Assembly (NCBI GenBank): GCA_964035545.1
Contig: OZ037767.1
Location: 13,315,801-13,379,800 of the forward strand
Direction: 5' to 3'
Length of the DNA stretch: 64,000 bases
Source: Bugula neritina
Taxonomy: Eukaryota; Animalia; Bryozoa
This document shows positions 25,573-51,500 of the stretch, one piece after another; within the stretch, counting starts at the first letter, position 1, and the number at the start of each line of letters is the position of its first letter. Both the position numbers and the translations under genes were made by a program. The notes under the pieces were generated by a model that was not told the origin of the DNA, ran no database searches, and saw only the letters and a list, made by a program, of their open reading frames with translations.

Positions 25573-28461
25573 AAATTCATTAAATGCTCCTGTGGAAGCC
25601 AACAATCATGCAAAACGAGATATGGCTGTTCTAATACATCTATCCCATGCACAGAGCTCTGTTCTTGTGAAGCAGTAACAGGATTGTGCTGCAATGAACT
25701 AACATTTCTAACAAATGCTAATGATAGAAAAAAATGAGAAAGGTGTTTAATATGAACATGAGCGAAAGTTTGTCACATCTTTATAATTATATATATGTTC
25801 CATTTTAACTTTAGCTGAGCAATATGCCTCTGTATCTTTTTCACTTTCTATTCACTGGCAATAAGCAATTTTTCTTCTTTATATATCTGTCCAAACAATT
25901 ATTCAAAAACCTTGCATCATTTTTCCGCACCATATGTGATGTTTTATTGAAGCAATTCCGATTTTTGAGCTGAGCAACATGTCTCTTCGCTCTTTACTTT
26001 GATTTTTTTGCACTGGCATGGCACATATTCATTCCAAAAATGCACATCTATTTGAATCATCAAAAAAATTTTGCTTTTGCAACATAATATAGACTTTATG
26101 CCTATTAGATTACGATTTTTTCATAATTGGCGGCCATCTTGGATTTCTCGAAATGCTCAAGGGTGGCAGGTCCACACCCACCTGGAAACATTTACCTGTA
26201 CCCTCAAGATAAATATTCAAGAGAGAAAAAAACTTTATCCGAGATTGCGAACCTAACCCCTAGTTCTGCCAAACTATATATAGTTATAGCTATAGTGAGG
26301 CTATATTAATCTCTAATAGTAATAATAATACCATTACTAAAGTATAAGTATAACGACATGATTAATTTTACGTTTAAATTATAATTATGAAGTACAATGT
26401 GTGTATTATAAATTATTATATAACATTAATTATAAGAATAAGTAGCATAACTATGCCGGCTATTGTAATTCTAGTTATTTACAATGATGTTAATTCGAAG
26501 TTCAGTATAACTTATTATCAATATTATATAAACTTTAGTACTACTAAATTATAAAAGTAAATAACTAATAATATTAGTATTACTAATACTAATAGTTATA
26601 GTAATAATAGTAAATGAAATGCTAATACTAACAGTAATAGTTATACTTACAGTTAGATTTACAGCTACCTATATAGTTATAACTTATAATACATTTCCAA
26701 GAGTAAGTCTAACATAAACAATTAAGTCAATAACTTAGTAAGTGTAACTAACTTACTAAGTTGAAGTTATACTAATACTAATAATAATGGTAATACTAAT
26801 AGTAATACTAATACTCTAATACTAATAGTAATAGTTATAGCAATACCCATAGTGATAGAGCAAATCAAAATGAAAATGTAATAGTAATACTTTTTACTTT
26901 TTGTAATACTAATAGACAGTAACAGTAATACTACTAGTAATAGTTAATAAGTTATAGTAATACTAATAGTAATAGTAATACTAATAGTAATACTATTAGT
27001 ATTACTATAGACATACTGATACTATAGTATAACTATAACTTATACTTATACTTATAGTTATAGTATAAGTATACTAATACTGATAGTAATACTAATCAAA
27101 TTTAAAAAGTCCAAGTCTACAGAACTAAAATAACGATTGTTGGATGATTAAAAATACTCTTTGCAGAGCTCTAAATCTATGCAACTACTGTCCAACTCAA
27201 CTATTATAAAATACCATGAAAGTGCAAAATTAATAATTATCATCAGTATTTTCATTTTTAATTTGCTCGTTAATTCATTAACATCAACTTCAAGTGTAAC
27301 GGAAATTGGCGTTTCAAGACAGTATACGGTCACAACGGGTTTTTAAACAAAATCTAACTTTCAAAATAATTAACGTAAAATTTGAAAAAAATTTACAACT
27401 TTTTTATTTAATGCAGATAATTTATTATTCCAATAAGAAATTTATATAATTTTAAATTGCAATAATAGAGAAAGAATTTTGTTTAAAATATTGGAATTTC
27501 CCAAACAAATCGAAACTGGCAAATTGTAGCTTTGGGGACAGTTCTGGCATCTTAGTTACCACCGACACAAAATAATACTATGTTTGTTAGCTACTTAAGA
27601 CTATTGTTATTAAACTCAGCAGATGACAAATAGGCTCACATTAGGTGATTAACTTGGCTCACGTAAGTCTAACTACTACTACTTTACCAAGTCTATAAAT
27701 AATTAATAATTTTTCCGGGTTGGTGTACATTAATAACAGTGTATGACGATTTGCTAGAAAATGTTATTATTCTAGTAAGTGACATTTTTTTATTACACAA
27801 CGTTATTAACATCAAATTACACAACTAATTGAGACAATGAAAGCCATAACGCATGTTACTTATTAAAATATTATTTCACTATGGGTGACCACTGACTGTT
27901 GCTGCTTTGACACCAATTTTAGTCATTATCTCCCCTCCATGAATAAAATTAATTTCACCGTATTTGTAGCCATTTGAGGCAGCTATGGTTAGTGAAATAA
28001 CTGCTAGTGCAATTCCTATCACATTTCACTACAATTTTACTTTTGATATTTTAAACTGCTGAAAACAAAGAAAATAAACATAGGTAGTCATAATAAAAAT
28101 GTAATAATGTAGTGAGTCACGCAAAGTACAAATACGGGAATCGCCCTCTCTCCGTTCTGGGAATACTAAGGCCCCTATGTAGCAACCAATTAGCAGCACC
28201 GGAAGATATGCTTCCGACTCACGTGACACTTCCCGGGCGATTGACATTTGATCACGTTGTTGTAAGCGGAGGCTTGAAGTAGAAACATGTGTTAGTAGTT
28301 GACTGATGTATAGGATAATTTGATGTAATGTTTGCTTTGTGTTTTATTGTGGATAATAAATATAATTACTCGACAGCTACCCTAGTAATTGCTAGTAGAA
28401 TAGCCAACTAAGTATACGCAAGTAGATAACTCACGCACAGTAATTGCACAAATTACTACAG

Positions 28462-28479
28462 TGGCAGCAGCGGTGGGAT
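28462..28479 (+). promoter_or_regulatory. Primer binding site, probably tRNA-Leu
   Basis: TGGCAGCAGCGGTGGGAT 1 nt after the 5' LTR; matches the complement of the tRNA-Leu(AAG/TAG)-type 3' end (TGGTGGCAGCGGTGGGAT) with 2 mismatches. Confidence 0.75.
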
Positions 28480-28495
28480 CTTGCGTATAACAGTC

Positions 28496-29380
28496 ATGGC
28501 AGAAGACGGCACGGAGCTACCCACTCCACTGAATGAAGGTGAGAGAGATAATGTTGATATACCTGTGGAACCAGTAGTGTTAGAAGAAGTGAGAATTCCT
28601 AGAGAGCCTGGTGAAGACAGATACCGGCTGAAGGCGCCCACCTTCACAGGCGAGGAGGCAGTAGAGCAGTTTATCCAGGAATTCCAAGATGTGATGGAAG
28701 TTGCACAGTGGCCACCAAGGGTGGCGTTGCTCAAGCTCAGGATGGCGCTGACGGACAAGGCTAAGCCATACGGAGCGGGACCTGACATAGACGGAATCTT
28801 TGCTTCTCTGCGGGCCCGTTTTGGCATCTCCCCCATAGATGCGCGGGCCCGTCTTCAAAGGCTGCGGCGTGATCCTCACACGTCGCTACAGGAGCACGCT
28901 GCCACGGTATATCCACTGGCGCAGATCGCGTTCCGCGATCTGCCTCAAGTACACCGTGAGAGGTATACTTATGATGCCTTCGTGCAGTCCATCAACGACT
29001 TGGGGCTCCACCATCAGTTCCAAGCGAGGGGAGTCACCACGGTCGAGGATGCACTTGCGGTGGGAGAAGCCTACCTCATGGCAACTCATATGCACCGCAA
29101 CCGCGTGGCCTCCCGCCAGGTGGCCACGGAGCACACTACTGCTCATACTGAACCAAATGCGGAACCCTCCGCGGTGGCTAATGTGAACCAGATGTCACTA
29201 GCATCAAAAGTCGCACAGATGACTGACATGCTAGATAAACTGGTCGCCGCATTAGCTCCCCCAAGCCAGGTAGATACCGCCCGTGAGCCTTGCGGGCCGC
29301 AGGTACAATCACCAGGCATGGGGCATAACTTCTGCTGGGACATTTCCAGAAGAACTGCCCTCAACTCCAACAAGGGTTAA
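28496..29380 (+). CDS. gag: Gag (capsid-like; zinc knuckle disrupted)
   Basis: LKAPTFTGEEAVEQFIQEFQDV...W...LRARFG capsid-like motifs; knuckle remnants CW and GHFQKNC lie in different frames. Confidence 0.85.
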   Translation: MAEDGTELPTPLNEGERDNVDIPVEPVVLEEVRIPREPGEDRYRLKAPTFTGEEAVEQFIQEFQDVMEVAQWPPRVALLKLRMALTDKAKPYGAGPDIDGIFASLRARFGISPIDARARLQRLRRDPHTSLQEHAATVYPLAQIAFRDLPQVHRERYTYDAFVQSINDLGLHHQFQARGVTTVEDALAVGEAYLMATHMHRNRVASRQVATEHTTAHTEPNAEPSAVANVNQMSLASKVAQMTDMLDKLVAALAPPSQVDTAREPCGPQVQSPGMGHNFCWDISRRTALNSNKG

Positions 29381-31397
29381 ACTACCACGGCCCGCAGATG
29401 TTCCCACCTCCTGCGGGCCGCCTGTAAATCACCCAGGGAGGACCGCGCGTCTGCCGCCCCGCTGGGCGCCGCGCGGAGATGCTGTGAAGTGGCGACCCCC
29501 GCGGCAAGTAGGCTCAAGCCACTTGCCGCCTGGGTCCTCTACGCCACTCCAACACCAACACGGATCCGGCAGACGGTTGATCTCAGAGCCTGCGAGGGAA
29601 ACGGTACAGGCGCCGCAAGGCGTACCGCCCCAACCTCGGCAGCTGGTCAATAGTCGTCGCCAACCGTGGACCCCTCGACCCACAGCGAGGGAGGTGCAAC
29701 CACGGCACACACAGCTGCAGCCACACGGAAGTAGCTACTTTCTGCCAGGAAAGCTAGCCGGCAAGCCTGCCAACTTCCTTCTGGACTCGGGCTGCACCAC
29801 CAACCTCCTTAGCCGTCAATTCTTTGACATCCTCAGCCCTAAGGTCAAGGACGGGTTGGCGCCGCATGAGGGGGATCATGGCACCCTGGCAGACGGGTCG
29901 TGCATTCCCTTCTACGGCATTATTGAGCTGACTGGTTACATCCGTAACCAGGCCATCCAAGAGACGTTCATCGTCGGGCAGCTCAACGAGGACGCTATCC
30001 TCGGGATGCCATTCTTACAACGACACGGATGTCGCATCGATTTCAGTAAATCTGCGATGATCATGGGCGACAGGGAGCTCGCTTGTGTCGATAAGTTTGG
30101 TCGTCCTCTAGCGGGAGCAGTGCAGGTAGTACGGAGCTGTACGATGCCAGGCCACTCCCGGGCTACCGTCCGCTGCAAAGTGGACGGTGGCCAAACCTCT
30201 AAGTTGGGAGTTGTCGAAAGTACGCACTCAAGAATCCAACTTGCCCATAGCTTTAGCCGGCTTACGGGACAAGGAGAGATCTCAGTGCAGTGCGTCAACC
30301 CCTCCTCAGAGACGGTAGACCTACCCCCCAGGTCCATGCTGGGCCGCTTCCATCCTGTCCAGGAGGAAGCCATTGGGCCGTTGTCGGGAGCTACGACGGA
30401 AGGTCCTCAGCAGAGCCCGTCTCAAGGGCGGAGGACCGTCCCAACCCACGCCTCCTCTCCTCCAGGGACGCGTGATGACACAGGCAACAGAAAGCGCCAG
30501 GCTATGGCTATGTTGTCACACGGGTACAGTGAGGCACCCCGCCACACAGACCACGACGCCCGCCTAAATAGAGCAGGCCGTCGTGAGGTACCACGGGCGG
30601 CGAAGACCGCCCCTGCTCAGCAACTCCAACAGAGGGCTGACACGCCCCCGGAGGCTGTCCAGAGCCTCCGCGCCAAACCTGTATGGGCTGGTAACGTTAG
30701 GGAGCTGCCGAAGCTCCAGGAAAGCCTTCCTGGGGTGGTAGCCGACGTGTACCGAGCGAAACAGGAAGGGCGACGACCCAGTAGTAGACAACGGCGACAG
30801 GGATGCGCCGAGTTACGGCTGTACTGTCAACGTTGGAACTCTCTGCGGGTCGGGCCAGATGGTCTGCTGACCATGACCTTGGCCGCCAACAACAGACAAC
30901 CAGCCAGGAAGAGGATCGTCTGCCCAGCTGCCATCCGCCGGGAGTTGATACAAGACACCCACGAAAAGACTCACGGAGGAGTCCAGGGGGTGGTCACCAA
31001 GCTACAACTCCGGTGGTACTGGCCCAACATGGAGCGGGATATCCGGCGCAGAGTGAGACGGTGCGAAGTCTGCCAGGCCAACAAGCATAGCCGTCTCCCT
31101 GGTGAAGCGGGGCGGCAGACGCATTGTGTGAGAAGGTCTTGGCAAGCGGAGACTGTCGTCCTGGCCGGAAACACCTCCATGACACCTCAGGAAGACTTGG
31201 CAAGGCGAGAAAGGCCACTTCCGTCCTTGAAAGTGCGCCCACCGCCCCCCAACGTCAAGCCTGCCATCACCACCACTTCCGGAACCAGAAACGGGTCCGG
31301 AAGTGCAAAAACCCCCCGTGGGAGGGGCTCCGCAAGGAGATACCAACGTAGGAACAACCGTCACAAACAGGCTGGAAAAACCACCCGTGAGACATAA
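29375..31397 (+). CDS. pol: Internally deleted Pol: aspartic protease plus integrase zinc-binding domain
   Basis: Within the 704-codon open frame: FLLDSGCTTNLL and DAILGMPFL (retropepsin), then THEKTHGG...WYWPNM...CEVC (HHCC). No YxDD, RNase H or DDE motifs. Confidence 0.88.
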
Positions 31398-31745
31398 CAA
31401 TCCACGGGTGAGCACACCGCCTCCCACAGTGACGACGCCTCCAGGACCACACACTAGGCAACCCCCAGCGTGTCTCGGAGACTTTGTACGTGACCGCGGT
31501 ACAAGCGGCAGTTACGAAGGTCTAGCGAGGTCTCGCATGGGAAAACAGGCAAAGAGACGTGGGAGTTGTGAACACCACGGAAATCTCAACTTTTGCCTCG
31601 GCGGAATCTCACACGAGATTCATCCGCTGGAAGTGAAAAGCCCTAGTCACGCTTCACAACCACGCTGTCCGGTCTTTTCCTACGTTGATGCAGTCAAGAG
31701 TAGACGTGCCACTAAACAGTAATCATTTACCGCTCTCATTCCAAA

Positions 31746-32801
31746 ATGTCTTACTATTCTGGATCGAAGGGTGAGTTAATTATGTTTTTGGTACGGGAAC
31801 TAGACTGCATCAGTCAGCTTTAGCTACACCAGTAGCAAGCTGGAGATTCGATAATGAAAAACAGTGGTGGAAACACACGTCGACTTTGATTTTAAATAAT
31901 CTGCCATAGCGAGTGTGTTCTCCATCAACTATTCATTAGCCTGAATCTCAGGAATGTAACTGAACAGAGTACCTGTCAGGCTGTACACGCCGGCGATACC
32001 TCAGTGTATAATCTTTAACACTGCTACTCTTTCAGATCACACTCGAGTGACCACCTCCCGGTCACGGGACCAGCCAACCCCTCTACCTATGGAAGAAAAA
32101 CCTGTAATGGAGAATGGCTTACCCGTGGTGCTTCGTCGATGACACCGCTGGGTGTCACCCACGACGGAAAGGAGAATTGAGGAAGCCTGGGGACCCAGCG
32201 GACCCCACCGGACCTGCCAGGTCTGCTTCGAGGAGTGCCCGTCACACCGCTCCCTGCGTCTGCATGTAGACGCCCATTTTCTACTCCATTTCTGCCCATG
32301 CGGGTTCCACGATGTATACCCGTATCCTGTGATCGTCCACAAGTTGAGCTGCTTCGCCGGAGAGGGCCATATTGTTGATGAGGACAGTTTCCCCCAGTAC
32401 CTAGACACCATCAAGCCAGTCATCAAGAAGGCTATCACCCTGGCCGCACTAGCGTCAGGATTCCAAGTACTGCTGTTATCCGCCCGCCATAAGTCCCTAT
32501 GGTTCAGGGCCCGTCTCCTACCCCCGTCAACCCTAGCAACACCCCCAAGTTAGAAGGAACAACAATACCCCCAATAACAGAGACTACTACAACCCCACCA
32601 AGGCCTAGCCGACTGGCTAATGTAGAAGAGTGGCTTGTAAAACTACAAGCCGAGTTTACGCAACTGGCCCCTGACCTGCTGGATACGACGACAGGTCTAT
32701 ACCAGCTGAAGGACTCAGTGGGGCGACTGAAGAGGCGGCTACGTGCCCGACTGGCTCGACACAGAGCACGCTCGCTACAAGAGTCAGAGTCCACCCAATG
32801 A
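31746..32801 (+). pseudogene. Spliced accessory ORF of the LTR element: C2H2 zinc finger(s) plus basic coiled coil
   Basis: ATG 31746, donor G|GTGAGT at 31771, acceptor tctttcag| at 32035, in phase with CQVCFEECPSHRSLRLHVDAH. One in-frame TGA (32140) and one frameshift (~32497) lead into the 32499-32801 frame. Confidence 0.65.
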
Positions 32802-33369
32802 GTATGCCTGGGGTAGGCACCTTTCGTTGAGCTGTATTTTCGTCTGGAAAGTGACGAGTGCTTTGACATTGGCCCGCGTGCTGGTAAGCACCCTCTCTCT
32901 TTATAGCTGACTAGATGTGTGTGTTCGATCACCCTGTTTACTTCTGTATATAAATGTTGTCGTACTCAACTATTTCTTCCTTTTTGTGTGGGTTTACTTA
33001 TGTATGAGTCACGCAAAGTACAAATACGGGAATCGCCCTCTCTCCGTTCTGGGAATACTAAGGCCCCTATGTAGCAACCAATTAGCAGCACCGGAAGATA
33101 TGCTTCCGACTCACGTGACACTTCCCGGGCGATTGACATTTGATCACGTTGTTGTAAGCGGAGGCTTGAAGGAGAAACATGTGTTAGTAGTTGACTGATG
33201 TATAGGATAATTTGATGTAATGTTTGCTTTGTGTTTTATTGTGGATAATAAATATAATTACTCGACAGCTACCCTAGTAATTGCTAGTAGAATAGCCAAC
33301 TAAGTATACGCAAGTAGATAACTCACGCACAGTAATTGCACAAATTACTACAATAATATAATAAGATAC

Positions 33370-33732
33370 TGTGATAGATTTTGAAAGCTATCTTTCTTTT
33401 ACATACACATTTGCGTAAAACCTTTTTATTTGGGAGTTATCTTTTTTGTGCTTGCGCATTTGAAAGCTCTTATTTTATTGTTTTGTAAATCCGAATTCGG
33501 ACACCCGAATTTCGGGGTGTCCAAATTCTAGAGTATAAAAGGGCGAGCTTGCTAGCATAATTTCAGTCTAGTGCTGGAGCTCAGAGGTAGCAAAACTTGT
33601 ACACATATACTTATACTTTTATTGGAAACTATTTAATAAAGACACCGTCTAACCGGAATTGCCTTCTCTTTTCTCTCACCAATTAAGAGTTATGTTCACT
33701 AGTTGAGTTCTTGCACACCACAAATTATCACA
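33370..33732 (+). mobile_element. Solo LTR (family 2)
   Basis: TGTGATA...TATCACA ends, TSD ATAC on both sides, TATAAAA at ~33534, AATAAA at ~33635. Confidence 0.85.
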
Positions 33733-33767
33733 ATACAACATAGGTGTGACACTCCCTAGAGTCATAT

Positions 33768-34343
33768 TGTAATGGATTTTCACCCTCTATTAGTTTTGAA
33801 GTAACTGTGTGAGTCAGTATTATAACTACTGTTGCGTATCGTTTTGAATGCTGTAATTGTAGCTAAGTTGGGCTAGCTTTCTAATGCCTTATTATTTGTG
33901 ATTGTTGTTAAAGCTTTCCGTATAATGTAATTTTCATGAAATACGCATTTCCAGAGTTATTTTCTCTTTTTGCTATTTTATCAGTTTTGCATTAATACTG
34001 ATACTGGAAAGTTGTGTGGCTTTTATGAATGCCTTCAATAGGTTGTTATTATAGCTAAATTCTTGGCCTATTGAATTATTTGTTCTCCTTTGTCTACTTT
34101 CTTTTGTTTCTGTCAAGCTTAACTTTCTTTTGTCTGTTGGAACATTCTAGATTGTGAATTCTTGTGTATAAAAGCCAGCGAGTTCCAGTATAGATTCAGA
34201 CTACTACTGGAGCTCGCTGGTAGTAGGGCCCTAAGCTGTATCTGATACAATAAAAGTTATCTTTCATTCGTACTCAAATACTTGGCTTATTCTTTCTAAA
34301 GCATGTAGGCACTAGTTGCATTCAGAACCCACAGTTTACTACA
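33768..34343 (+). mobile_element. Solo LTR (family 3)
   Basis: TGTAA...CTACA ends, TSD ATAT on both sides, TATAAAA at ~34167, AATAAA at ~34249. Confidence 0.82.
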
Positions 34344-34551: not shown

Positions 34552-37500
34552 ATGGAACAAACTCCCTCCAAACCTGTTTTGAAGATAAGCTGTGGTTTCT
34601 GTTTCGGTAAAGACTCCGAACTGGAAACACCAAAACGTCTTCCTTGTGGTCACATATATTGCCTTCGCTGCTTAACTCTAGATAAGAAATATAGAGGAGC
34701 AATCAAATGTCCCCTATGCAGGTATTGATTATTATTACTGTGCCAATTTAGATGTGAGTGTATATAAACTTTTTTCTCCAAAATAGCATTTATGCACTAG
34801 AAAGTAAAATGTTAGTAATAATAGTTATGCAAAAACATAATAAAAACTTGCGCAAGTTTATATATGCCGTCCCTGTGAGAAAGCTACTGAATAGAAGGTT
34901 TTTTTGTTAAATTGGGCTAAGGACTTACTCAGATGGTGCACAGGAGCAATTATGACTGGATGCTTTTCCTAACATCACCAATGGTCTTGACTGGGGTTTG
35001 AACCCATGACTTTGCATTTACTAGGTAAACGCTCTAACCCCTAGACTACAGCTGCTCCCTTATATAAAAACTTAATAGTTAACTTTTAATACTGAGTAAA
35101 TGTTTTATATCACCATTATGTTGGATTATGAACATTCTAGAAAGGACTACAATGGCTCTCTGGAGAGCTTACCCTTGGCTTTTCATAGAGATGATGAATC
35201 TTTGCTATGTGAGGAATGTAAGAAAAAGCATTCAGAAGGCACTGTATTGGACTCTTTTTGCTTTAAATGCTCAAAATTGAGTTATGCTCAATATGAAAAG
35301 GTTTGTTTGTAATATTTGGTTTTTAGTATAAATATGATATATTTGTGTTATTTATAACCGAAATTTTGTTAAAAATGCGGCAATTATAAAGCATTATGTG
35401 TTTTTGAAGGAGAAGAAGCATAAGGAAAGGAATGCTCCCAAGCTCTGTGAACATCACGGTCTACCGTGTCTTGATGGCTGCAGTGCCTGTTACGTTCTAC
35501 TGTGTGAAGAATGCATTAAGTGCGCGGGACTATGCTGTGATGGTACGTGTTCATCAGTGGAGCATTTGCTTTGAAATCTCCACCACATTTTTATATCACT
35601 GGAAAGCAAAAAGCTCACATATGAGCCAGGGTGTCTGATAAAAATGGCACAGGTAAAAACGACACAAATGGAAAGGTACGTAAAAGTGGCACATTTTCGA
35701 TATTGAGTTTTGGGATGTAGGTTTAGGTTGCGGTTTAGAAGTTCGAGTTTGGAAAATCTAACATCAATGTGCTATTTTTACTTACTTTTCTATTTAAGCC
35801 ATTACTACCTGTGTAATTTTTACCATGCCATATATACCTAAACTCATTAATGAGGGCAAAAAAAGTTATAATAGCAGAAGTGTGCTATTCGAAATTAAAC
35901 GTATCTTTTTGACATTTTTTGTATTACTCTGTTGAATATAAGTTTTCAAACAGTTAATTAGTTGAACTCAAACACCTGATACCTGATAACAGTGTTAAGT
36001 GCCTAGAGATCAGAGTTAGAGAGCAGCCTTGATTGAGTGTTTTAGTTTATTATTTGAACTTCTTCATCTGTTATGGGTCATTTTACTTAATTTAGTACAC
36101 ACTGGATATCTTCAGTTTTTGGCTATTTTTCACAATTTAGCTAGTAATGAACATGATTTTTTGGCAAAAACTAGTAAAACATCAATAAATACACCTAAAT
36201 AATCAAAGTTCTTTTTAATTTTGCTTCATTTCCCATGTTTTTCCCTAATTATTCAGCTAGTTTTAGTTACGGATTGTTACGGTTTTTTCGTAACAGTCCG
36301 CACATATAGAATATTAAATGCATATGACAATGACCTGTGCTTTAATGTTGGAGAATCCCCTACCAGCCTTTTCTGTTATGCGTAGTTAAAACCAGCACAT
36401 AAAAATAGCATGTATAGTAAATTTCAATTGATTTTGAGCAAACTTTAATGTTAGATCATAAGTTGCTGGTCTTTACTAAATGAAGTAAACTGACTCTTAT
36501 ACAAACAAGTTGAGCTCTAACTGCTACCTAAAGTAAGTGGCATCGTTGGTCAAGTATATTTCTATATATTAAACACAGGCTAGCCTATATGAGATTTATT
36601 GTAACTGAGCATAGTGGTACCTATAAATATAATTTCTTTTGTATTTTATGTCTTTGCTTGATATGGTGTCTGTTTTATTTTAGTTTAAATTATATAACTA
36701 AATAGATGTTGTTGTCATCTAACCTTACACTGAGGTCTGAGAGGCTGATTATAGACTTAGCTTTTTCTGAGTGAGCCAATTGAAAGCAAAAGGCTAAAAT
36801 ATCCAAACTAGCTATTTTATACTACAGTTTCAACGATTAATTAGGAACACAAATTATTGATATTTCTAGAAAATCTACATTGTTTATTTTTAAGTCACGC
36901 AAGTTTATAGTTGATATCCTTGTGAGAAACTCCTGATAGAAAAGGTTTCCTGTTGAATTAGGGCAAGAACTTATTCAGATGGGGCACAGAAGTAATTATG
37001 ACTGGATACTCTTCTTAACATCACCAATGGCCTATTGGTTCGAAACCATGATTTCGTGTTTACTAAGCAAACGCTCTAACCCCTAGACCACGGCTGCTCC
37101 CTTGTTTATTTTCATGCGTATCATTATTGTGTACTAATTTAAATTGTATTTTGCTAGTAAAATTAATGATGCTTGAGGTGCAACCTATTATGTGAAGTGA
37201 AAATAAGCCTTCAGATTACTCCTATGTTATAGGTCATGGCTAGGGTATTTCTATTAAGCACAATCTCACTTCAAAGTGGTTTTAAACACTTATACTTTTT
37301 TCTGGTATTTTGAAGCTAAGTGTAAAGAAAGTTAAAAAAACCAATCAAGAGAACGACAACTAATGACTATATAAAATTGTATAGCTAATAAATTGTTGTA
37401 TTTCAACTTTTGCAGTATGTTGTGCTTAAATATTTATGATTTTCTGCTTAGGATCCGCACATCAAATAACACAAATGAATGACTTGGCTGACATTGTTAA

Positions 37501-40500
37501 AGAGTTCTATGAACAATTGGATTGTAAAGTGAGAAAGCTTACGGATCTATACATAGAAATATTCAGGGAACTAGAAGACTGCCCTGATATAGCTGAACTA
37601 AACAAAGATGAGGTAAATCTTAGCGTTGCCTATCCATGAAATTACTTCGAGTTCTAAAGTTTATATGGTTGGGTTTCATCTATAAATATTCATCAACAGG
37701 GACAGGAATTGAAACTATGCTAGTAAATACTTTGACTTGACATAAATTGGTGTGAATAATATGCATTGATTATAATATGTATAGGGCATTTTTACCACAG
37801 TCCGTCTATAGGGGATAATATTGTATATTGTCATTTCAATGTCTCAACTTTTTTTGTTATATCAGTTTTTTGTGAAAAGTAACTGTTCTCATAGGTCATA
37901 AGTAGTGAGTAAAACTCATCATGTTGGTTTTGGGGTGGGAGTATGAATGTAGGGGTTTGGAATTTGGGTTTGGGAAAATTTAAGATCAGTGTGCCATTTT
38001 TACCTATTTTTCCATTTGTGCCATTTTTACCTGTGTCATTTTTACTGGACACCGCTGTGAGTATATAAATTACATTACAGGCTTGGGCTAGTTTTCATAT
38101 ATATTTTTGCTTAGCTAAAGAGAGTCATCGTCATAAAATGTCATCAGCATTTTCTCAAATTCCCAAACTGTCAAAAAGAATTACTCTTGAAGATGAGTTA
38201 AATTTCAGCGATTCCTGAAAATGAACTATCTTTAAAATCTACTGTATTAAAATAAATATTTTTGTAATTTTAGCTTATAGTCAAGTATTTATTTACAAAT
38301 ATTTTAGTTGGATAGACTGCAACACTTTTACGATAGACTCCAGAAAGACTTTCTGATAAATATAAAGAGTGCTAAACAGAGGATTTACAGATTCTCAGAA
38401 GAGAATGTATTTGCCAAATTATCTGAGGTTTGGTCTGTGAGAATGAGGCTGGAAGCCGTTATTAAGTACGGCCATAAACCTGGACTGCTCACTCACTACG
38501 CCATGATAAAAGATCATGTGCAGAACATTCTGGAAGAAGAAATACCACCATTTAATATCGAAGGTGTGTTTTTTGAATTTCCTCATCAAACTTAGTTAAC
38601 TTAACTTTATAAGCCAGTTCTAGCCTTCAACGTTGGTGAAATTGATGTTCAAAATAATCACTCGTCAGCAGTGTATTCTGTAAATTTGGGAACTGTTTGC
38701 GGCTGCTCCTGTTTGTAGATTTTATGGCATACTTATGTTTATTATCAGAGTTGATTTTTATTGAACCAGTAAAAAGCAGAATTTAAAAAAGTACATACCA
38801 AGGCTGGCACTGCTAATTTTTTGAAACTTTGTGGTTAAAAATGTGCTTTCATCCCACTCCCAAAGCTGTTGAACAATCAAGGCTAATCACTAGAGCCGCA
38901 AACACTATGGCATTAAATGACAAAAAGTCAAAGCACAAATGACTTAGGCCTTAGTGCATACATATACAGTGAAAGTTTAAGAATTGGTGTATTGAGATAA
39001 TATTGCTAAAGAAATAGTAAATTATGTTCAGTTAGCTATATTTAACATGAATTTTGTTACAGGTGTTTGAAGCCACATATTAAGTAGTCTATTTTTATTT
39101 TCTTATTAGATTTTTATACAGAAGAATCTAGTTCCTTGGCCACTTCAACTGAAGGACTATCAAACTCATTTTCCGAAGCAGATGCGCAGAGCATAGACTC
39201 AGAAAAGATTTCTGGCATTTCACAGTGCGTTGACCCATGTTTTCTTGTTACACAGCTATCCTAGATTATTATTCAACGGTTTATGTACAAATATTGCTAC
39301 TGTGCAAATATTGCACTGTAGCAATATTTGTTGCAATTATGCATAGGGTAGGAAAGTGCATAAGCTTTTTCTAGAAGTGCCTTTGTTAAAGCTTTGCAGC
39401 TCAAATATTATTTTAATCGCAATGTAACTGCAAAGTTTAAAGAAAAATAAGTTTCGAAAATATGATGTCGTAGTACTGAATGTTTCAGATTGTTGATAGA
39501 CAACTCAGTTGAGTGTCCAGAGATGCTGTATGATCCAGACAACTCAAACAGAATAATGATTCTTGGTAAAAATGCAGGGAATATTCCATCAGAAAGTCTG
39601 GATCAGTTCAATATTGTTTCTAAGGAGATCGAGTCACCTATTCACACAGTACAATGCCCAATACATTTCCCAAAACAAAAGTCAAATGCTACATCTACTA
39701 TTTCTGATTCTGAAAATTCAGATTTCTTGCAAATTGACTATCTGCCACATTCTGAGGAAATGACAAAGCCAGCCATTGAGCACTCTATCAAACAGAGCCT
39801 AACAAGCTCGGTAGAGCCTTTAGTAAACAATGTATCATTAGCCCAGGAGCCATTCTCAATATTCTGTACTGAGCATGACCACTCTTTGACCCAGTTGGAG
39901 TGTGCCGAGTGTTACAACCATATGTGCAGTCAATACCTCATTGACTCAACACAATCCCAGTATGGTGAGTGCCATGTCTATTTTTACCTGAAATTCTCTA
40001 AGTAGATATAAAAGAGCAGCTGGGGTTAGAGCGTTGGCTTAGTAAGCACGAAGTCAAACCTGACAAAGGCCATTGGTGATGTTAGGGAGAGCATTCATTC
40101 AGTCATAATTGCTCCTGTGCCACATCTGAATAAGTCTTTAACAAAAACTCCTTTCCATCAGGGGTTTTTTCACAGGGATAGTGACAATGAACTTGCATGA
40201 GTTTTTTTTCTCTAAGTGAATATGTAAATATTTTTAATGATCGGTTTGTTTAACAAGGCATGCATTGCTCCAGTAATTCATTTGATTAGCTTAAACATTC
40301 CAATTAATTTACTGCTAGAACAAACATGAAATCACTCAATTTAATTTGCGCAACAAGTGTTCATGGCTTCCATTTGATCTAAATTAGCTCTGAAAATGAT
40401 ATTGTTGTAGTTTTGCACACTACTAGTTGTGGGTCTTATTGCTGTTACTGTTATATTATTATGTGTCTTGTTTATCACTAATTACGGACTAGCGAGATGC

Positions 40501-43500
40501 TACGTTATAATGTCATGTGCATTTGTTTATTAAAATACATATTGGGTCAAGGACGAACGAGAGACTACGAAAAAAAAGATGTCAGCCTACAGTAGATAAA
40601 CACGCCGATAGACTTTGTGATAAATAATTATAAATCAGTATTATACTTTTGGTCCTTGTATTTCCCCTGGCCGGCCAGACCCCAGTTTATTGTTCTTTCG
40701 ATACTTCAATGTCATGCCTACATACTTTGAGTAACTCTCAGGTAATTATATACTCACTATACTTAATGTTTCAGTTACTAATTACTGCATCTTGCTGTGA
40801 GGTTATGTAAGGAACCGAACAAGTAGATCAGAAATGTGAGAATATATTTTAGGAAATAATACACAAGTTAAAAAAGACTGTACATAAGTCGATAAAGGAG
40901 ATAAACAAGAGTCACAATAGTTACATGAGTTAGCCTACTAGCTGCTAGTACAGTCCTTGTGTGTCAGTGGGCAGGTGCAGTTTACATGTATGAGGTCGGC
41001 TTTGATTGGTTGACCTAGATTTCACTTTTTATTGTCTATATCAATTGGCGGGGTATTTACATCACGCCATCCTGCCCACCGCATGGAAAACGGCATGACT
41101 AGCTTGGAAACGGGATGATTGTCCATAATTTATAACATAATGTTTAGCAGGGGACAGAGAGGGTTACACTTCCGCTAACCATTACAATATTATATTTTTT
41201 TACATTAATCAAAATAAATTGCCATAGGGAATGAGGGAAAAGAGTTAATTGGCAATCAGTTAGTAGATGAAAAGTATGACTGTAAAAAAAGTAAGAATCA
41301 ACATTTCTATTTTCTTTCAGATTTTGAAGCACATCTGAAAAACATTCAAGATCAACTCATGAAGAAAGAAAATTTATGGATGCTGGCATACAAAGAACTC
41401 ACTGAAAAGCTTATGGAATTTGATATGCAAAATTGGAAATGCATCAAAGAGTTACGCCAAGAAGCTAAAATCAAGGTTTAACGCTTGCCACTGGGCATGC
41501 TTATAAAATTGTAGCATAAACTTTGCCGAAATACGCTAGTGTTTTATATCTATTATTGAAATCAGTAAGAGCTGAATTTTGGAGCAGAATTTTAGTTTAC
41601 TGTTACAGTTACTTGATTATAAAATAAATTTTCCTTCACTGGGATTCGAGCAGGCGCATTAGCCATTACATCATGGGAACACTAGATGAACTCATTGCTA
41701 CATTGATTATATTTTGCTTTTAAATTACTTGTTAACTATAAGGTCAGGCAATCGCAATTAATTACTAAAAATCAGTTTTCAAGTGTTTTCTATTTATCTA
41801 CCATTCAGAGCTCCATGATATACATATTATTATAGTTCAAATAACGATGCTGCTAGAGATTAGGAGACATTCAAAGCAGTCGCTTTAAGGAAAAATTTAT
41901 TGAATGTCTTCTGTTCGATCAACTTATGCGATATTCTTCCTCTAAGAATGCAAACAAATTTTGATTAACACAGTTATTTCGGTACATAGCAATTTCTGTT
42001 CGTGCTTGCAGCATTATAATTTGTGAAAAAAACTTGTCTTATTTGGAAATTTTCGTTATTATAAATCATTCTGTTCTACAACTAGCAGTGATACCGCTGA
42101 CTATTAATTTCAATTTCACAAATTATATTGTACTTTGCATATTGAATTTGTTATAAACTAATTATTTGCTGTCAATAATTAAGAATCAGGTTACCAACTG
42201 TGAACTTTCATTGCAGACAGATGTTCGACCAACCATAATGAATGGAGTGATTATTGCATTTAACATCGTCAAATGACTTTTAGGAAATCTTGATTTTACC
42301 ATTAAACCTCTTGTGTGGTCTAACTAATAATTTTGAACCTAATCTCAAATACCTGAGAGTAATGTTTAGAATTTAAGAAAAAATACTTAGCTGGCAATCT
42401 TTTTATGGTGGCATCTGCTTAGATCAAAACTTTTAATAAACATCTTTTTTAGAGCCAAACGATTGATGAAAAGTACAAGAAAATGAAAGAATGCAGGATT
42501 GCCAAGTTTGGTGCTGCCAAAGAGTTATTTGCTCGAAATGTTGTTGGAAAAAAGTTGTTTGATTCTTTTGCGATTTATAAAAAACTCAAGGCTAGAATAG
42601 AATATGGTTCAAAGGTTCGTATAAATTTGTGATAATCTCTTTTGTACTAATAAAACAAGCAAATCAATGTAACATGCACACAAGAAGCTGTTTTTTGTTA
42701 CTAGCACTAGTTCATTATTTGCTATTGGTGTATTTGTTTAAACTATAAATGATTACAGTATATATACATTTTATAACTATTATTAATTAGAATGGCCAAG
42801 GTTTTCACTTTATAAGCAAATATATTTGAGAAAATTTCACTACCGACCATCTGATTTGGTAATTAAGTTATTAGCTTGTACAATGGTTGTAATATTTTGT
42901 CCACAGTTATATTTATATTTCAATCATAATTATGTTATAATGTAAAAATTCAGGAAATTAATTCTCTGCCATAAACTCATAAACCATGCAATATATATGT
43001 TACAGGCCGAGGTTATTGAGATGTTTGCTAAAGTTAGAGGTGATGTGGACACTGCACTCAGTGAGAAGCTACCTGAATTTATACCGGAGGGTATGTTATC
43101 TTTTTCCCCATGCCCAAACTCACTAAGAAAAGTTAGGTACCAAATCATAATGTCTCATACAAGGTTTAATTGGTAAATTGTTATTTTAAATGTTTAAGCT
43201 GTGAACACTTGGGCAGGTTTTCCGTGTTTTGACTATCATACTACCTTATCTCTGGGCTTAACTGCTAGCAAATAAGTTGTTTTTTTTGGTTTAATTTTCA
43301 ATTTGACTGCTTCCACTTTCTCTCTCTTTATCTCTAAGTTTTCTCCAGTCTCTCCTATAACTATTATAAGCATCTGATGAGAAAGAAAAGAATGGGCTTT
43401 CCAGTTTTTACTGGCCGTTATTAAATTTTTTATTATAATAAAAAACAGCAGGCTGAGTGATGACTCTTGGTTTACACTAACCTTTATTCAGACTTAGTAG

Positions 43501-45998
43501 GTTTTTTGGCATTCGCCCTGATAGTAGTGGTATTGTTCTTATACATATCTTTAATGAGTTTAAATGATATTAGTTCAATCAGTTCCGTACACAGACCCAT
43601 GTTAGCTCTTACAGTATCATAGGCTTTTTTGACCTTCTACTTGTTGTCGTTTTCCTGTATTCTTTATTTTTTCCATACAATATTTGTCTGCTAACTATTA
43701 ACTATATATTAACTCTATTAACTGTTGATTGTATCTTTTCATTCTACTATCACAGCTTTGTCGTTAAGTATTTAACCACCATTGATTCTCCCAAAATTTC
43801 TTTAGCTACATTAATAACCATCCGATAAGTTTCTGCCCGCTGAAGTCTCTCCTCGGGTAAATTCATCTCTTTTCTCATTCAGATTTTCTATCAGTTCTTC
43901 CCTTCATGTTTCTTGAGCTTTTACCAGCTCGTTTTCTCCTATTCTAGGCCTTTTCTTTTTGTTGCTGTAATTTTAACTACCAGTAGTATACACTTGACCT
44001 GAAAATCTATCCTATCTTCATGCTACAACTTTTTTGTCAAGTTTTAGTATTGTCTTTATACTATGTGTTCCCTTAGAATTTAGCATTAATGAAACAAAGT
44101 CCTCAAACAGCTCAAGCGAAGAAAAAGCAAGTGACCTTACTGAATCAGAAAGCAAAAGTTCAGACGATATTCCTGATTTTTCTGAGTATGTTTATGTACC
44201 TTTTCATATCTTTATTGAGTATTGTCTCACTTAAACCTAACTCATTTCTCTTTCCATTTATATAATCCTTGTTAAAAGTGTTATCACAGTCTTATTCTTT
44301 TTAATTGAGATTAATTAATATTGATTGTAGTTTATTGGAAAAGCATGCTGTTGAAAGCCCTGAAATCGCCTATGACCCTGATGACAGGAACACCATACTG
44401 ATTCTTGGTAAAAATGCTGGAAGCAAACTGCAGGAGGATCTTGATGCCCTATCTAAGGGGACCAAATTTACATTAATTGCCAGAGAAGCACAGTCTTCAA
44501 CTCATACAACTTCCATGAGTAATTCACTCCAGATAACAAAACAAATCCGAGAAGCTAACGACTGGAAAACGGCAGTGGTTGCATCATGTGAATTACTTCT
44601 GCATGCTGTTTGTCGTAACAAAGAAAATAATGAAGAAACGAAAGAAATGGGATATTTTGTTGGGCCAGCACATATGGTTTTAGGTAAGCTACAACGAACG
44701 GAGTTTGCAAGTGTTGACAAGAGTTTAGAGGCCCGAAAAGAAGTTGAGAAGAAAACTACTGAAACAAGATTTGTTGTTGAACAGTCTCCAGGAAGTCATG
44801 TAGATCTCAATCATCCACCATTGATGTCTTACAAATACTGGTGTTCGGGAAGACCTCGAGGTGGAAAGCAAGCAGATGAACAGTGTGATTGTTTAAACTT
44901 GACATGTCAAAATTATCTACCAACATGTCCTTTGTGCGAGATGCCAAGTGAATGTGAAAGCTGTAAAAAATTTGATGATAAATTTGCTAATATCAAAGGT
45001 GGTTTATTGAATACTGCTGATTTTTTTAAGGCGTTTCATAAAAAGAAAATGTTTGATGACATACCAATCTGTGGGCACATGATACTTAGTGACATGCTCT
45101 TTTTAACTGTTGATCTACAGAAGGCCTTAGAATTATACATTCAGCTCAAAAACTCAACCAAACGGTACCGTCCAATCAGAACCGTAGGTGAGCTGAGGAG
45201 ATATGCCAGTAGTGAACAGACAGTCAAGATAGGTGAACACGACGGCCAATTAACAGAATTACCCACGACCTATGAACGTGTTCAAACAGCTCGTAATGGA
45301 AGACATCATTATTTTTTTGGATTACACTTGGTGTTCAAACTCATTGCAAAAACAGAGCATGGACCAATACTGTAAGTTTGATTATTGAATCTATATGCGT
45401 GAACACGCACAGGCACACACATATAATGCTCTCAATCTATGCTTAGAAATTGGTGCTTCTATGATTGAGCACTTGAACAAAGGCCACAACTTTAAGCTAT
45501 TATTTAGCATTATGCAAAGTCATTAAATCTTACTTAGGCACACTGGTTTGAATTTACACACTTTTCAAATACTAGTTTCTTTCATTTCTAAGGTGTGAGC
45601 CATGGTACTCTGTTCTGTCCTCAAGAGGGGACAAACCCTCAAACAGCCGCTGTACAAAAATTAAGTTGTTTGTGCTCGCTAGTAAAGTTGGGTTTATGTA
45701 ATCATTGAGCTCACTAAATACAGCATTTTTTGGCTTACATAAGCTATTATTTTTTAGAAAATTAAAAGAAGGAGATTGTGGGAAGATCCTCTATGAAAAA
45801 AAGGACAACAAGGATCCTTTGCCTATTGGAATGTTCATTGGGGAAGTTGAGAACATACCTAACTTATATAGGGCCGTTCTACTCCAGCATTCAATCAAGG
45901 AAATAGAACATATTTACCCGCACTACCTGGGTAACACTGAGCTAATTCGAGACAAGTATGCTCGAGAAAACAGCTATACTAGACAGGGGCCATGCTAA
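34552..45998 (+). CDS. TRIM/RBCC-type protein (RING, B-boxes, coiled coil, duplicated module) with a C-terminal trypsin/chymotrypsin-fold protease-like domain, ~1087 aa
   Basis: 13 phase-consistent exons: 34552-34721 (C3HC4 RING CGFC...LPCGHIYCLRC...CPLC), 35141-35300 (B-box1-like), 35410-35542 (B-box2-like), 37452-37612, 38308-38563, 39110-39224, 39489-39964, 41321-41475, 42453-42614, 43006-43090, 44077-44185, 44331-45371, 45758-45998. Total 3264 nt, open frame. Confidence 0.82.
34845..35059 (-). mobile_element. tRNA-headed SINE
   Basis: Reverse complement of the family at 48666 and 63314; A-box and B-box (GGTTCAAACC) in the head. Confidence 0.85.
35630..35845 (+). mobile_element. MITE-like element with repeated GGTAAAAATGGCAC subterminal motifs
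   Basis: The same end sequence occurs inverted at 37990-38053; TSD not resolved. Confidence 0.65.
36075..36496 (+). mobile_element. Sola-like MITE, full length
   Basis: Same TIRs as 17681-18101; 4-bp TSD TTAT. Confidence 0.87.
36895..37101 (-). mobile_element. tRNA-headed SINE
   Basis: Homologous to the other copies in the window. Confidence 0.85.
37782..38053 (-). mobile_element. Second copy of the GGTAAAAATGGCAC MITE-like family
   Basis: Ends ...gtgtcatttttactggacacc, the reverse complement of the 35630 end. Confidence 0.62.
40013..40203 (+). mobile_element. tRNA-headed SINE (degenerate)
   Basis: Shares the ggccattggtgatgttagg...cagtcataattgctcctgtgcc core. Confidence 0.8.
43290..44010 (-). 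mobile_element. Highly decayed RTE-type LINE RT fragment (intronic)
   Basis: Minus-strand remnants VAKEILGES, KAYDTV, KLIKDMYKNNTTTIR, QESSLSLLFFIII. Confidence 0.6.
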
Positions 45999-48514: not shown

Positions 48515-51500
48515 CTAGTCAATTGGTTTGTAGAGTAGAGTTGTGACACATTTCTTCCTGAATCTGCTCGTATCGCTTAACACCATCACCCCATCCTACA
48601 GAGTGAAGTGAAACTGTACAGTACTGAGTAATATAATACACATGGAATAGTATATAGATTCACTAGAGAGCAGTCGTGGTCCAGTGGTTAAAGTGTTGGC
48701 TTAGTAAACACAAAGCCATGGGTTCGACCCCCAGTCAAGACCATTGGTGATGTTAGGAAGAGCATTCAGTCATAATTGCTCTTGTGATGCATCTGAATAA
48801 GTCCTTAGCCCATTTTGACAAAAAACCTTCCAACAGGGGTTCTCGCAGGGAGAGTGACTATAAACTTGCGTGAGTATATTGATTCACTGCGGCACTGCAA
48901 CTGTCCTTTGACGATATAACCCAGATGAAACAACTTTAATAGAACAGTCTGGAAGAAAAGCTGAGCAATGAGATCACTGCTTGTGAAGCAATATAGTATT
49001 ATTTCAGGCTCCATTCCAAATGAGTTAAAAGGGACTGTGATATAAGTAGATAAAGGGTTAGCAACAATGAAAACTAGAAGACAGGATCATAGATTGTACA
49101 TAAAAATTAACTTTTGGTATCAGATTTTAAAAGTACAAGGCAGATCTGTTCACGACAAGTAGAGAGCTGGAATAGCATCATAATATGTCTATATCAGATG
49201 CCTATATCATATGTCTATATCACATGCTTGTAAACTCATACAAGTTTATAGTCACTATCACTATAAGAACACCTAATGGAAAGGTTTTTTAAAAGCTTTT
49301 TCAACAATGGCCTGTACTGGGGTTCGAACCCATGACTTCATGTTTACTAAGCCAAACCCCAAACCCCTAGACCACGGCTCATCTCTATATCATAATATGC
49401 TTACATAGTTATTATACCTATATTAAAAGTTGAGAAATAATTTTCATACCAATATAACTAAACAATAATCATTTTTTGTATTAACTTGAATCGTATTACT
49501 AAATACAGTTTTCAGCTTACAGACTCGCGTCTGCTGAAGAAGACATGGGTTAGTTTACGTACCTTGATGGAGAGAGCGTAGAGATGGTTCACCATAACGT
49601 GATTGGGCTCCGGCAATAGCCCGGGTTCTAACTACAAAGACAAAACTCAGTAAGATACGTGAAGAGGGCAACACAACAATACTATTTGTAGTACATAACG
49701 CAAGGAAATGTCTAAGGGAAAACTCACAAAAAGTGTCTAGTTTCTTCTTCAAGTAGCCACTTAGCATTTTGAATTATCAATTATTACGAATGAGAGGTGA
49801 AAACTCCCAAAAATCAAAACTATCAAAACTTTGGGTAATTATACAGAATTGTAGGTGTTAAACCGACCTAAGTACTACATGCAGGTGATCTACATATTGT
49901 GTATAGGTGATCTATATGTAATATATAGATGAACCTATATATTAAACACAGTTGACCTATATACTAGACACACATGACCTATATACTAGACACACATGAC
50001 CTATATACTAGACACACATGACCTATATACTAGACACACATGACCTATATACTAGACACACATGACCTATATACTAGATAAAACTGACCTATACACTAGA
50101 CACACATGACCTATATACTAGACACATATGACCTATATACTAGATATACATGACCTATACACTAGACACACATGACCTATATTCTAGACACACATGACCT
50201 ATATACTAGACACACATGACCTATATACCAGACACACATGACCTATATACTAGACACACATGACCTATATACGTACATGAGGGGAGATGTCTTTGTTTAG
50301 TATAACTTGTAGCAGATGTTGAGGTAAGACAGGCGGTCCGACATTTCGATCTGACAACTTCCTGGTTGGTATTTCCTGTCCATATTCCGTCTGTGGATAA
50401 TCTACGAAATTATATAACTCGGGTTATAGAGTAAGTGTAGTGTAAGTATAGTGTATATTAGTGTAAGTACAATGTAAGTATAGTGTATATTTGTGTAAGT
50501 ACAGTGTATACTCATATAAGTATAGTGTATGTTAGTGTAAGTATAGTGCAAGTACAGTGTAAGTATAGTGTATATTAGTGTGAGTACAGTGCAAGTACAG
50601 TGTAAGTATAGTGTATATTAGTGTGAGTACAGTGTAAGTATAGTGTAATTATAGTGTAAGTACAATGTAATTACAATGTAAGTACATCATACGAGTTGAA
50701 CAGACCAGGGGAGATGTGGGAACCATCGGATTTAGGTAGGACAGAATTGCCGTCAGTTTCCAGAGCGTCAATTATCTCAAAATCTGATTTCTTTACTCTG
50801 ACGACGTTGTTGAGATTACCGTGACTATCTGTGACTGTCGGCTGGAACAGACAGACAAGATATCCCGTTACTTCATAATAATATACAGAACTATCTCATA
50901 ATATACAGAACTATCTCATAATATACAGAACTATCTCATAATATACAGAACTCTCTCATAATATACAGAACTATCTCATAATATACAGGACTATCCCATA
51001 ATATACAGAACTCTCTCATAATATACAGAACTATTTCATAATAATATACAGAACTATCTCATAATATACAGGACTATCCCATAATATAATATATTATTAT
51101 ACACACCTCATTGGGGTGAATCACCCACTGCCTGTCAACATAGTACTTATAATGATGCTCTCCTTCTGGGAGTTCTACTATAGTGTAGAAGTTTTCTGTG
51201 CTGTAAGCAGAATGTGGAAACAACTTCAAGTATATTGTCTACAGAGGGAATGCTAGACACCACCATGTAACCAGGTGTCTAATACTTTATTTCAATTATC
51301 TTACTGCAACCGTAATAATATATGTTGATATGGAGGCAGAAATGGTCTAATAGTGTAAGCAATTATTCAGGACAAAACAAATTTAGATAACATCTAAATT
51401 TAAAGTTTCAATTTAAATTAAATGTTAAATTTGAAGAGTTGAAAAGTAGTGGACTGCATGCCAGGAGTGTAATTAGACTGTGGACTAAGGAATAAAAAGT

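Follow-up and report, generated by a model that had tools for sequence, protein, structure and literature searches.

A thirteen-exon Bugula neritina gene that probably joins an N-terminal RING finger to a C-terminal NAL1-like protease module with a cysteine in the nucleophile position

A stretch of 64,000 nucleotides from the bryozoan Bugula neritina (GCA_964035545.1, contig OZ037767.1, positions 13,315,801 to 13,379,800 of the forward strand; hereafter the window, whose numbering is used throughout) probably contains, from the ATG at 34552 to the stop codon ending at 45998, one 13-exon bryozoan gene for an intracellular protein of 1087 residues, with a RING finger first and a protease module resembling that of rice NARROW LEAF 1 (NAL1) last. 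Judged on a predicted structure, the C-terminal module is a cellular NAL1-like module, in which a domain similar to the ATP-binding domain (ABD) of NAL1 precedes a chymotrypsin-fold protease, whilst its sequence does not place it among the recognised members of the NAL1 family. The exon chain was rebuilt from splice signals, the B. neritina protein model P0004 and spliced contigs, and its frame was verified by exon-by-exon phase arithmetic: each intron is bounded by GT-AG, the phases fit and 1087 codons remain open. All 13 exons lie on the forward (+) strand.

The protease module is encoded by the last two exons. Exon 12 (44331..45371) holds the second of two ABD-like domains (from 44332), the first beta-barrel and part of the second, together with the catalytic candidates His775 (44671-44673) and Asp915 (45091-45093). 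Exon 13 (45758..45998) supplies the rest of the second barrel, a GDCG motif with the third candidate, Cys1015 (45777-45779), the motif PIGMFIG, a C-terminal helix and the stop codon. The four motifs to which an earlier note on this DNA had drawn attention lie where it placed them, GYFVGPAHMV and LSDMLFL in the open reading frame 44305-45375 and KEGDCGKIL and PIGMFIG in the frame 45705-45998; its statement that an intron splits GDCG is wrong, because the motif lies 16 bases into exon 13, which starts at 45758 behind the acceptor AG at 45756-45757. What the last intron divides is the protease domain, between its first and second halves. Across the family, His and Asp are invariant in 15 paralogues from the same genome and in sets of 68 and 71 sequences, both glycines of the G-x-S/C-G motif are invariant in 11 full-length spliced members, and the nucleophile is Cys or Ser in every member examined, so that the His/Asp/Cys arrangement read from this one gene is upheld with Ser as the sole substitute for Cys. 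Because His and Asp do not vary among the 71 family sequences, nor the two glycines among the 11 full-length ones, the motif set goes beyond chance.

The fold was assessed on a homologue from Watersipora (P0021, residues 70-445), modelled with AlphaFold from a 68-sequence alignment at a predicted local distance difference test score (pLDDT) of 89.3 and a predicted template modelling score (pTM) of 0.89. The model has the fold of clan PA, whose peptidases are built of two six-stranded beta-barrels, and the trypsin-like fold that the earlier note had proposed is thus found in a full-length homologue. A Foldseek comparison with the PDB ranked rice NAL1 highest (E 7e-7), with complement factor B (protease domain), senecavirus 3C (E 1.7e-4) and thrombin next. 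The VIA aligner, which is independent of Foldseek, gave NAL1 a Z of 15 over 270 residues (model 1-371 against NAL1 107-461), a match that includes the ABD and stands three Z units above every other protease; L5 protease, HtrA3, FAM111A (Z 11.5), DegS and many others lay at Z 10-12, and 107 chains reached a Z of at least 8, those among them that were listed being chymotrypsin-fold proteases (Z 8-12 behind NAL1). His121, Asp205 and Cys301 of the model occupy the canonical positions, in that the His opens a short helix that follows a strand, the Asp opens a strand and the Cys immediately precedes one, and their spacing to the chain ends is within a few residues of that of H234, D291 and S385 in NAL1. 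The nearest neighbours in the ESM-Atlas were mollusc clusters without a name and others in which Nal1_C, Peptidase_S64 or Trypsin occurs (molluscs, fungi, bacteria).

NAL1 (PDB 7Y77, 8PMG, 8PN2 and 8HAU; Pfam Nal1_C, PF25819) is composed of an N-terminal domain, an ATP-binding domain (residues 89-172) and a serine protease domain (184-458) with the triad H234/D291/S385, and its assembly into a hexamer sets the loop bearing the His in the active shape (PMC12012508). A Ser nucleophile and ATP-dependent trimers and hexamers are traits of the NAL1 family. Besides being the best structural match, it shares with the Bugula module a small alpha/beta domain placed directly before the chymotrypsin-fold protease, and both proteins are intracellular, with neither a signal peptide nor an activation peptide. 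The Bugula gene differs in its Cys nucleophile (Ser in NAL1 and in sister genes), in a long Cys-rich insert between His and Asp, in the fused RING and helical regions, and in that no sequence match to Nal1_C or to NAL1 chains was obtained, even by profile. Nal1_C gave no match at E <= 10 anywhere in the genome, and control genomes likewise gave nothing; in the literature NAL1 was found only as a plant protease. The module may share descent with NAL1: the two-domain architecture is common to both (Z 15), yet there is no sequence-level match.

Transcription of the downstream part was followed in spliced contigs from four public runs (two deposited as 'symbiont metagenome' RNA-Seq, the other two without a type and bearing the organism label of the source), which were compared with window positions 39900-45899. 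The contigs are ~90-95% identical to the window and therefore derive from close relatives or other types. Exons 7 to 13 are joined in them at 39966>41330, 41473>42451, 42612>43004, 43089>44076, 44185>44331 and 45363/45370>45758, so that the part of the proposed 13-exon mRNA within the compared stretch, including the splice between exons 12 and 13, is borne out. Exon 7 (39489..39964), which comprises the first ABD-like domain and, beyond a linker, a second Cys/His cluster resembling a B-box, is joined to exon 8 in contigs of X1, X2 and X3. Exons 8 (41321..41475) and 9 (42453..42614) both encode helical region, the former placed by the first two joints above and the latter by joints in X1 and X2, and exon 10 (43006..43090) has joints in X1, X3 and X7; once shifted by 1-2 bases to reach GT-AG, the contig joints agree with exons 7 to 13. 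Exon 11 (44077..44185), an acidic and Ser-rich linker, lies between the fourth and fifth joints, and the joint into exon 13 is present in X3 and X7. Two contigs run a further 1.3-1.4 kb upstream of exon 8, which would be long enough to reach exon 1 if exon lengths are as in the window (exons 2 to 7 amount to 1301 nt).

The complete chain was recovered in a second lineage. A 19.7-kb Bugula-like metagenome contig (L043) carries all 13 exons in the same order at 75-96% amino-acid identity, with every acceptor and donor kept and the phases too. Exon 1 (34552..34721, donor GT at 34722), with the start codon and the RING finger at residues ~13-57, is 79% identical there and retains all Cys and His; exon 2 (35141..35300), Cys-rich and with a sub-threshold likeness to a B-box, fits in phase and is 92% identical, and exon 3 (35410..35542), which is Cys/His-rich and B-box-like by pattern only, with no Pfam match, is 77% identical. 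A presumed helical or coiled-coil region is encoded by exon 4 (37452..37612; open frame, phases fitting, 75%) and a presumed helical region by exon 5 (38308..38563; covered by P0004, 92%), followed by a Ser/Glu-rich linker in exon 6 (39110..39224; matching P0004, donor GTGCGT, phase fitting, 86%). Between the window and L043 the overall synonymous divergence (dS) is 0.205 and the ratio of non-synonymous to synonymous divergence (dN/dS) is 0.35, with values of 0.53 for the RING exon and 0.15 for exon 13, which shows purifying selection on the gene. Since the 13 exons, their phases and their splice sites are conserved in this second lineage, it is likely, as far as sequence goes, that RING and protease are linked in one gene.

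The closest named public protein is P0004, a B. neritina hypothetical protein that is 84% identical over exon 12; it starts at a Met inside exon 5, joins exons 5-6-7 and onwards to 12, and is cut short by the end of its contig. A protein search with P0004 gave no longer transcript-derived protein joining the RING to the rest. The corresponding B. neritina contig (L026; GCA_010799875.2, VXIV02001118.1) is uninformative on the RING because, immediately before exon 5, it passes into unrelated GC-rich DNA and ends there. Compared with window positions 38308-45998, L026 shows a mosaic of divergence (dS 0.15-0.28 in exons 12-13 and 0.6-1.25 in exons 5b-9), whereas L043 is even at a dS of ~0.2; the mosaic points to recombination or gene conversion, either among old haplotypes or among cryptic species, unless the N-terminal half in that assembly is a paralogue. 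Four versions of exon 12 (the window, P0001, P0002 and P0003) are mutually only 79-86% identical.

These data also bear on whether the fusion is an artefact of the gene model, with a RING/helical gene (exons 1-6) followed by a separate gene for the downstream B-box-like, helical and protease regions. Such a division would agree with the start of P0004 inside exon 5, with the confinement of the RNA joints, from the comparison with 39900-45899, to exons 7-13 and with the presence of the ABD-like domain twice, as a tandem duplication would leave. However, exon 7 holds the first ABD-like copy together with the second B-box-like cluster and is spliced to exon 8 in the contigs, and because this one exon closes the first unit and opens the second, the halves are not cleanly separate genes. 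P0004 runs through the proposed boundary from exon 5 to exon 12, the contigs extend 1.3-1.4 kb upstream of exon 8, the phases of 13 exons give one open frame, and exons, order and splice sites are conserved in L043. We consider two genes an unlikely explanation and retain a single gene from RING to protease.

Several results nevertheless weigh against that single gene with a protease at its end. The RNA joints, from the comparison with 39900-45899, cover exons 7 to 13 only. When exon 12 of the window was folded alone (pLDDT 82), its best matches were chymotrypsin-fold proteases and NAL1, at a Z of 5-6.7 that is below the noise mark of 8, a low value which is expected because the domain was folded without its last strands. 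Pfam, PDB-sequence and profile searches with exon 12, exon 13, 15 paralogues and 11 full-length members returned no protease family, and Pfam gave no match for the 15 paralogues or for 10 public members. The zf-B_box match in exon 2 is sub-threshold (E 0.027; 15.1 bits against a cut-off of 24.1). Prediction of the module as a complex of two copies scored 0.00, which is evidence neither way.

The RING of exon 1 is the sole part of the N-terminal region that passes Pfam (zf-RING_UBOX, E 2e-9, over the cut-off; zf-RING_2, E 1.5e-7), whilst exon 3 and the tail of exon 7 resemble B-boxes by their Cys/His pattern only. The TRIM/RBCC assignment made in the earlier note therefore stands for the RING and is tentative for the B-box and the coiled coil. 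The protein is like TRIM/RBCC E3 ligases in having an N-terminal RING, then Cys/His-rich clusters, long presumed helical regions and a variable C-terminal domain; it differs in that its B-box is below the Pfam threshold and its C-terminal domain is a protease. A search of the literature found no description of a TRIM or RING protein with a trypsin-fold protease domain; according to the earlier note, recognised TRIM C-terminal domains are not known to include a protease.

Within the N-terminal part and the module, the first 54 residues of exon 7 and the start of exon 12 share 43% identity over 60 aligned columns (E 8e-14). This ABD-like repeat is the only proven internal duplication: neither exon 5 against exon 9 nor exon 3 against the tail of exon 7 gave significant similarity. 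A unit of B-box-like, helical and ABD-like regions may occur twice. A short frame in intron 3 (35958-36011; LIPDNSVKCLEI) resembles the start of the ABD-like domain (LLIDNSVECPEM) at an E of only 3, and is either a decayed third copy or a chance likeness.

The C-terminal domain of TRIM proteins is normally a recognition domain, and the protease-shaped domain described here could instead bind without cutting, taking the place of PRY/SPRY in the recognition of RING targets. Catalysis by the Bugula domain is deduced from sequence and model, and protease-like binding domains are common in the chymotrypsin fold, with haptoglobin and HGF among the matches listed. Against this, His, Asp and both glycines of the oxyanion motif do not vary and each member examined has either Cys or Ser as nucleophile, whereas dead protease homologues usually lose their catalytic residues; exon 13 is moreover under strong purifying selection (dN/dS 0.14-0.15). 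A purely binding role is accordingly improbable in our estimation, though it deserves some weight, and an active protease remains the preferred reading.

Approximately 26 loci in the genome carry the same two-exon module (of the type of exons 12-13), and a HMMER search of 1.84 billion representatives yielded 188 public proteins. Ten of these 188 were looked up, RefSeq 'uncharacterized' proteins of Watersipora subatra among them, and with P0004 all were bryozoan and uncharacterised; a word search with exon 12 had returned only four Bugula-type proteins. The family is undescribed and is expanded in bryozoans. Paralogues carry GDCG, GHCG, GDSG, GHSG or GQSG at the nucleophile, with Cys in 11 and Ser in at least 4 of the own-genome loci read, whilst among distinct full-length public members 8 of 11 have Ser and 3 of 11 Cys. 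Scoring of homologues shows a Cys nucleophile in part of the family, many sisters of this gene having Ser. In a maximum-likelihood tree built without the nucleophile columns the Ser/Cys state changes at least 2-3 times, and Watersipora P0138 (GDCG) and P0135 (GDSG) are sisters with support of 100/99. According to Rawlings et al. (2011; PMC3207474), no known peptidase family mixes catalytic types.

Two further Cys-rich features lie close to the catalytic residues. An insert between His and Asp (44881-44964, residues 845-872) has 8 Cys in 28 residues and is of low confidence in the exon 12 model, and directly before the catalytic Asp a C..C..CxH cluster (45067-45078) is found in many paralogues; one subfamily conserves it and the Ser-type clade lacks it. 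By analogy the cluster or the insert is possibly a structural zinc site; sites of this kind are present in the rhinovirus 2A and HCV NS3 proteases.

To our knowledge, based on the families of MEROPS, cysteine-type chymotrypsin-fold proteases are known only from RNA viruses, and the Bugula module has the chymotrypsin fold, His-Asp-Cys and G-x-C-G in common with picornavirus 3C and potyvirus NIa (clan PA, cysteine type). A viral capture could be imagined, in which a host RING gene acquired a 3C-like cysteine protease from an endogenised picorna-like element: GxCG is the hallmark of 3C, and Foldseek matched senecavirus 3C and many picorna-like polyproteins (E 1e-6 to 1e-3). The viral proteins are polyprotein enzymes, whereas the Bugula module belongs to an intron-bearing cellular family (conserved introns, ~26 cellular paralogues) with Ser-type sisters, in at least 4 own-genome loci as well as in most of the full-length public members, and Cys and Ser alternate even between paralogues as close as P0138 and P0135. 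The structural match to the viral enzymes is also weaker; NAL1 outranks every viral match and is the one match that extends over the small domain in front of the protease as well (Z 15, all others being at 12 or below), and the closest clusters of the Atlas, which come from molluscs, fungi and bacteria, are those of Nal1_C, Peptidase_S64 and Trypsin. As NAL1 is matched at Z 15, including the ABD, and chymotrypsin-fold proteases at Z 8-12, the module is not a captured 3C protease, or only with a very small probability, and the analogy with 3C made in the earlier note fails as to origin, the nearest structure being plant NAL1 and many sister genes having Ser.

Among cellular proteases, FAM111A of vertebrates resembles the module in being an intracellular trypsin-fold protease whose protease domain is matched at Z 11.5, and Ssy5 of fungi (peptidase S64) in that Peptidase_S64 clusters are among the nearest by language-model features. 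Both have a Ser nucleophile, no RING and no ABD-like domain, and no sequence similarity between them and the Bugula module was detected. FAM111A and Ssy5 are cytosolic or nuclear proteases of signalling or restriction.

Other family members combine the module with a GBP-type GTPase (P0057), with arrays of leucine-rich repeats (LRRs; P0138 and P0135) or with ankyrin repeats (P0105). Searches for RING and B-box patterns, and tblastn with the N-terminal exons of the window, found none in the ~10-12 kb upstream of 16 paralogues, and a genome-wide RING scan, in which 150 of 456 candidates were scored, found none beside a family member except in this gene. The same genome has tandem arrays of near-identical RING exons, 10-50 kb apart, on C8 (6.6-7.2, 9.3-9.4 and 0.1-0.9 Mb) and C3 (15.6-16.3 Mb); with dozens of equal-score matches, these are large expansions of RING genes.

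Repeats and composition around the gene were also recorded. A ~145-bp repeat, with copies 72-79% alike, occurs at 40041-40220, 34839-34988 (-), 36892-37033 (-), 48737-48875 and 63383-63526, three of the copies being in introns (1, 3 and 7) and the other two downstream of the gene. It is covered to very great depth by contigs from the RNA-type runs, and the loose ends of those contigs resemble a tRNA-derived box (GGGTTCGAACCC), which gives the repeat the appearance of an abundant short interspersed nuclear element of tRNA origin. In intron 3, a 430-bp stretch (36071-36500) is 93.7% identical to L026 10660-11089, where it lies in a different intron (between exons 10 and 12), and is probably a mobile element of recent origin. 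The RING exon is immediately preceded by a GC-rich block (28000-33900; 54-57% GC against ~34% elsewhere).

The protein would thus run from the RING through a Cys/His-rich B-box-like region, a helical region, the first ABD-like domain and a second B-box-like cluster with its helical region to the NAL1-like module. In the mechanism that we propose, the C-terminal domain would act as a thiol endopeptidase, the RING and helical part would provide ubiquitin-ligase activity and self-association, assembly would set the catalytic loop by analogy with NAL1, and cleavage and ubiquitination might be coupled, either on one target or on the protein itself. Because the module is also fused to a GBP-type GTPase, LRRs and ankyrin repeats and the family is expanded, the likeliest role, by analogy, would be that of a regulated intracellular protease of defence or signalling. 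The oligomerisation-activated innate immune effector suggested in the earlier note is likewise a hypothesis. More speculatively, bryozoans might deploy an assembly-gated protease of NAL1 type as an interchangeable effector module in intracellular defence, attached to RING/helical, GBP-type GTPase, LRR or ankyrin parts and mostly of the thiol type in Bugula; we put this forward as a tentative possibility that is more doubtful than the gene itself.

Our literature search brought up no RING ligase with a protease in the same protein. If the reading is true, this gene would encode the first E3 ligase to contain a chymotrypsin-fold cysteine protease, able to cleave as well as ubiquitinate its target once oligomerised on it. 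A cellular animal family that has flipped between Ser and Cys at least 2-3 times offers a natural system in which to see what else changes with the nucleophile, and NAL1-type proteases, so far studied as regulators of plant development, may have distant animal kin. The fusions to RING, GBP, LRR and ankyrin parts point to an unexplored protease-based branch of intracellular defence or signalling in invertebrates.

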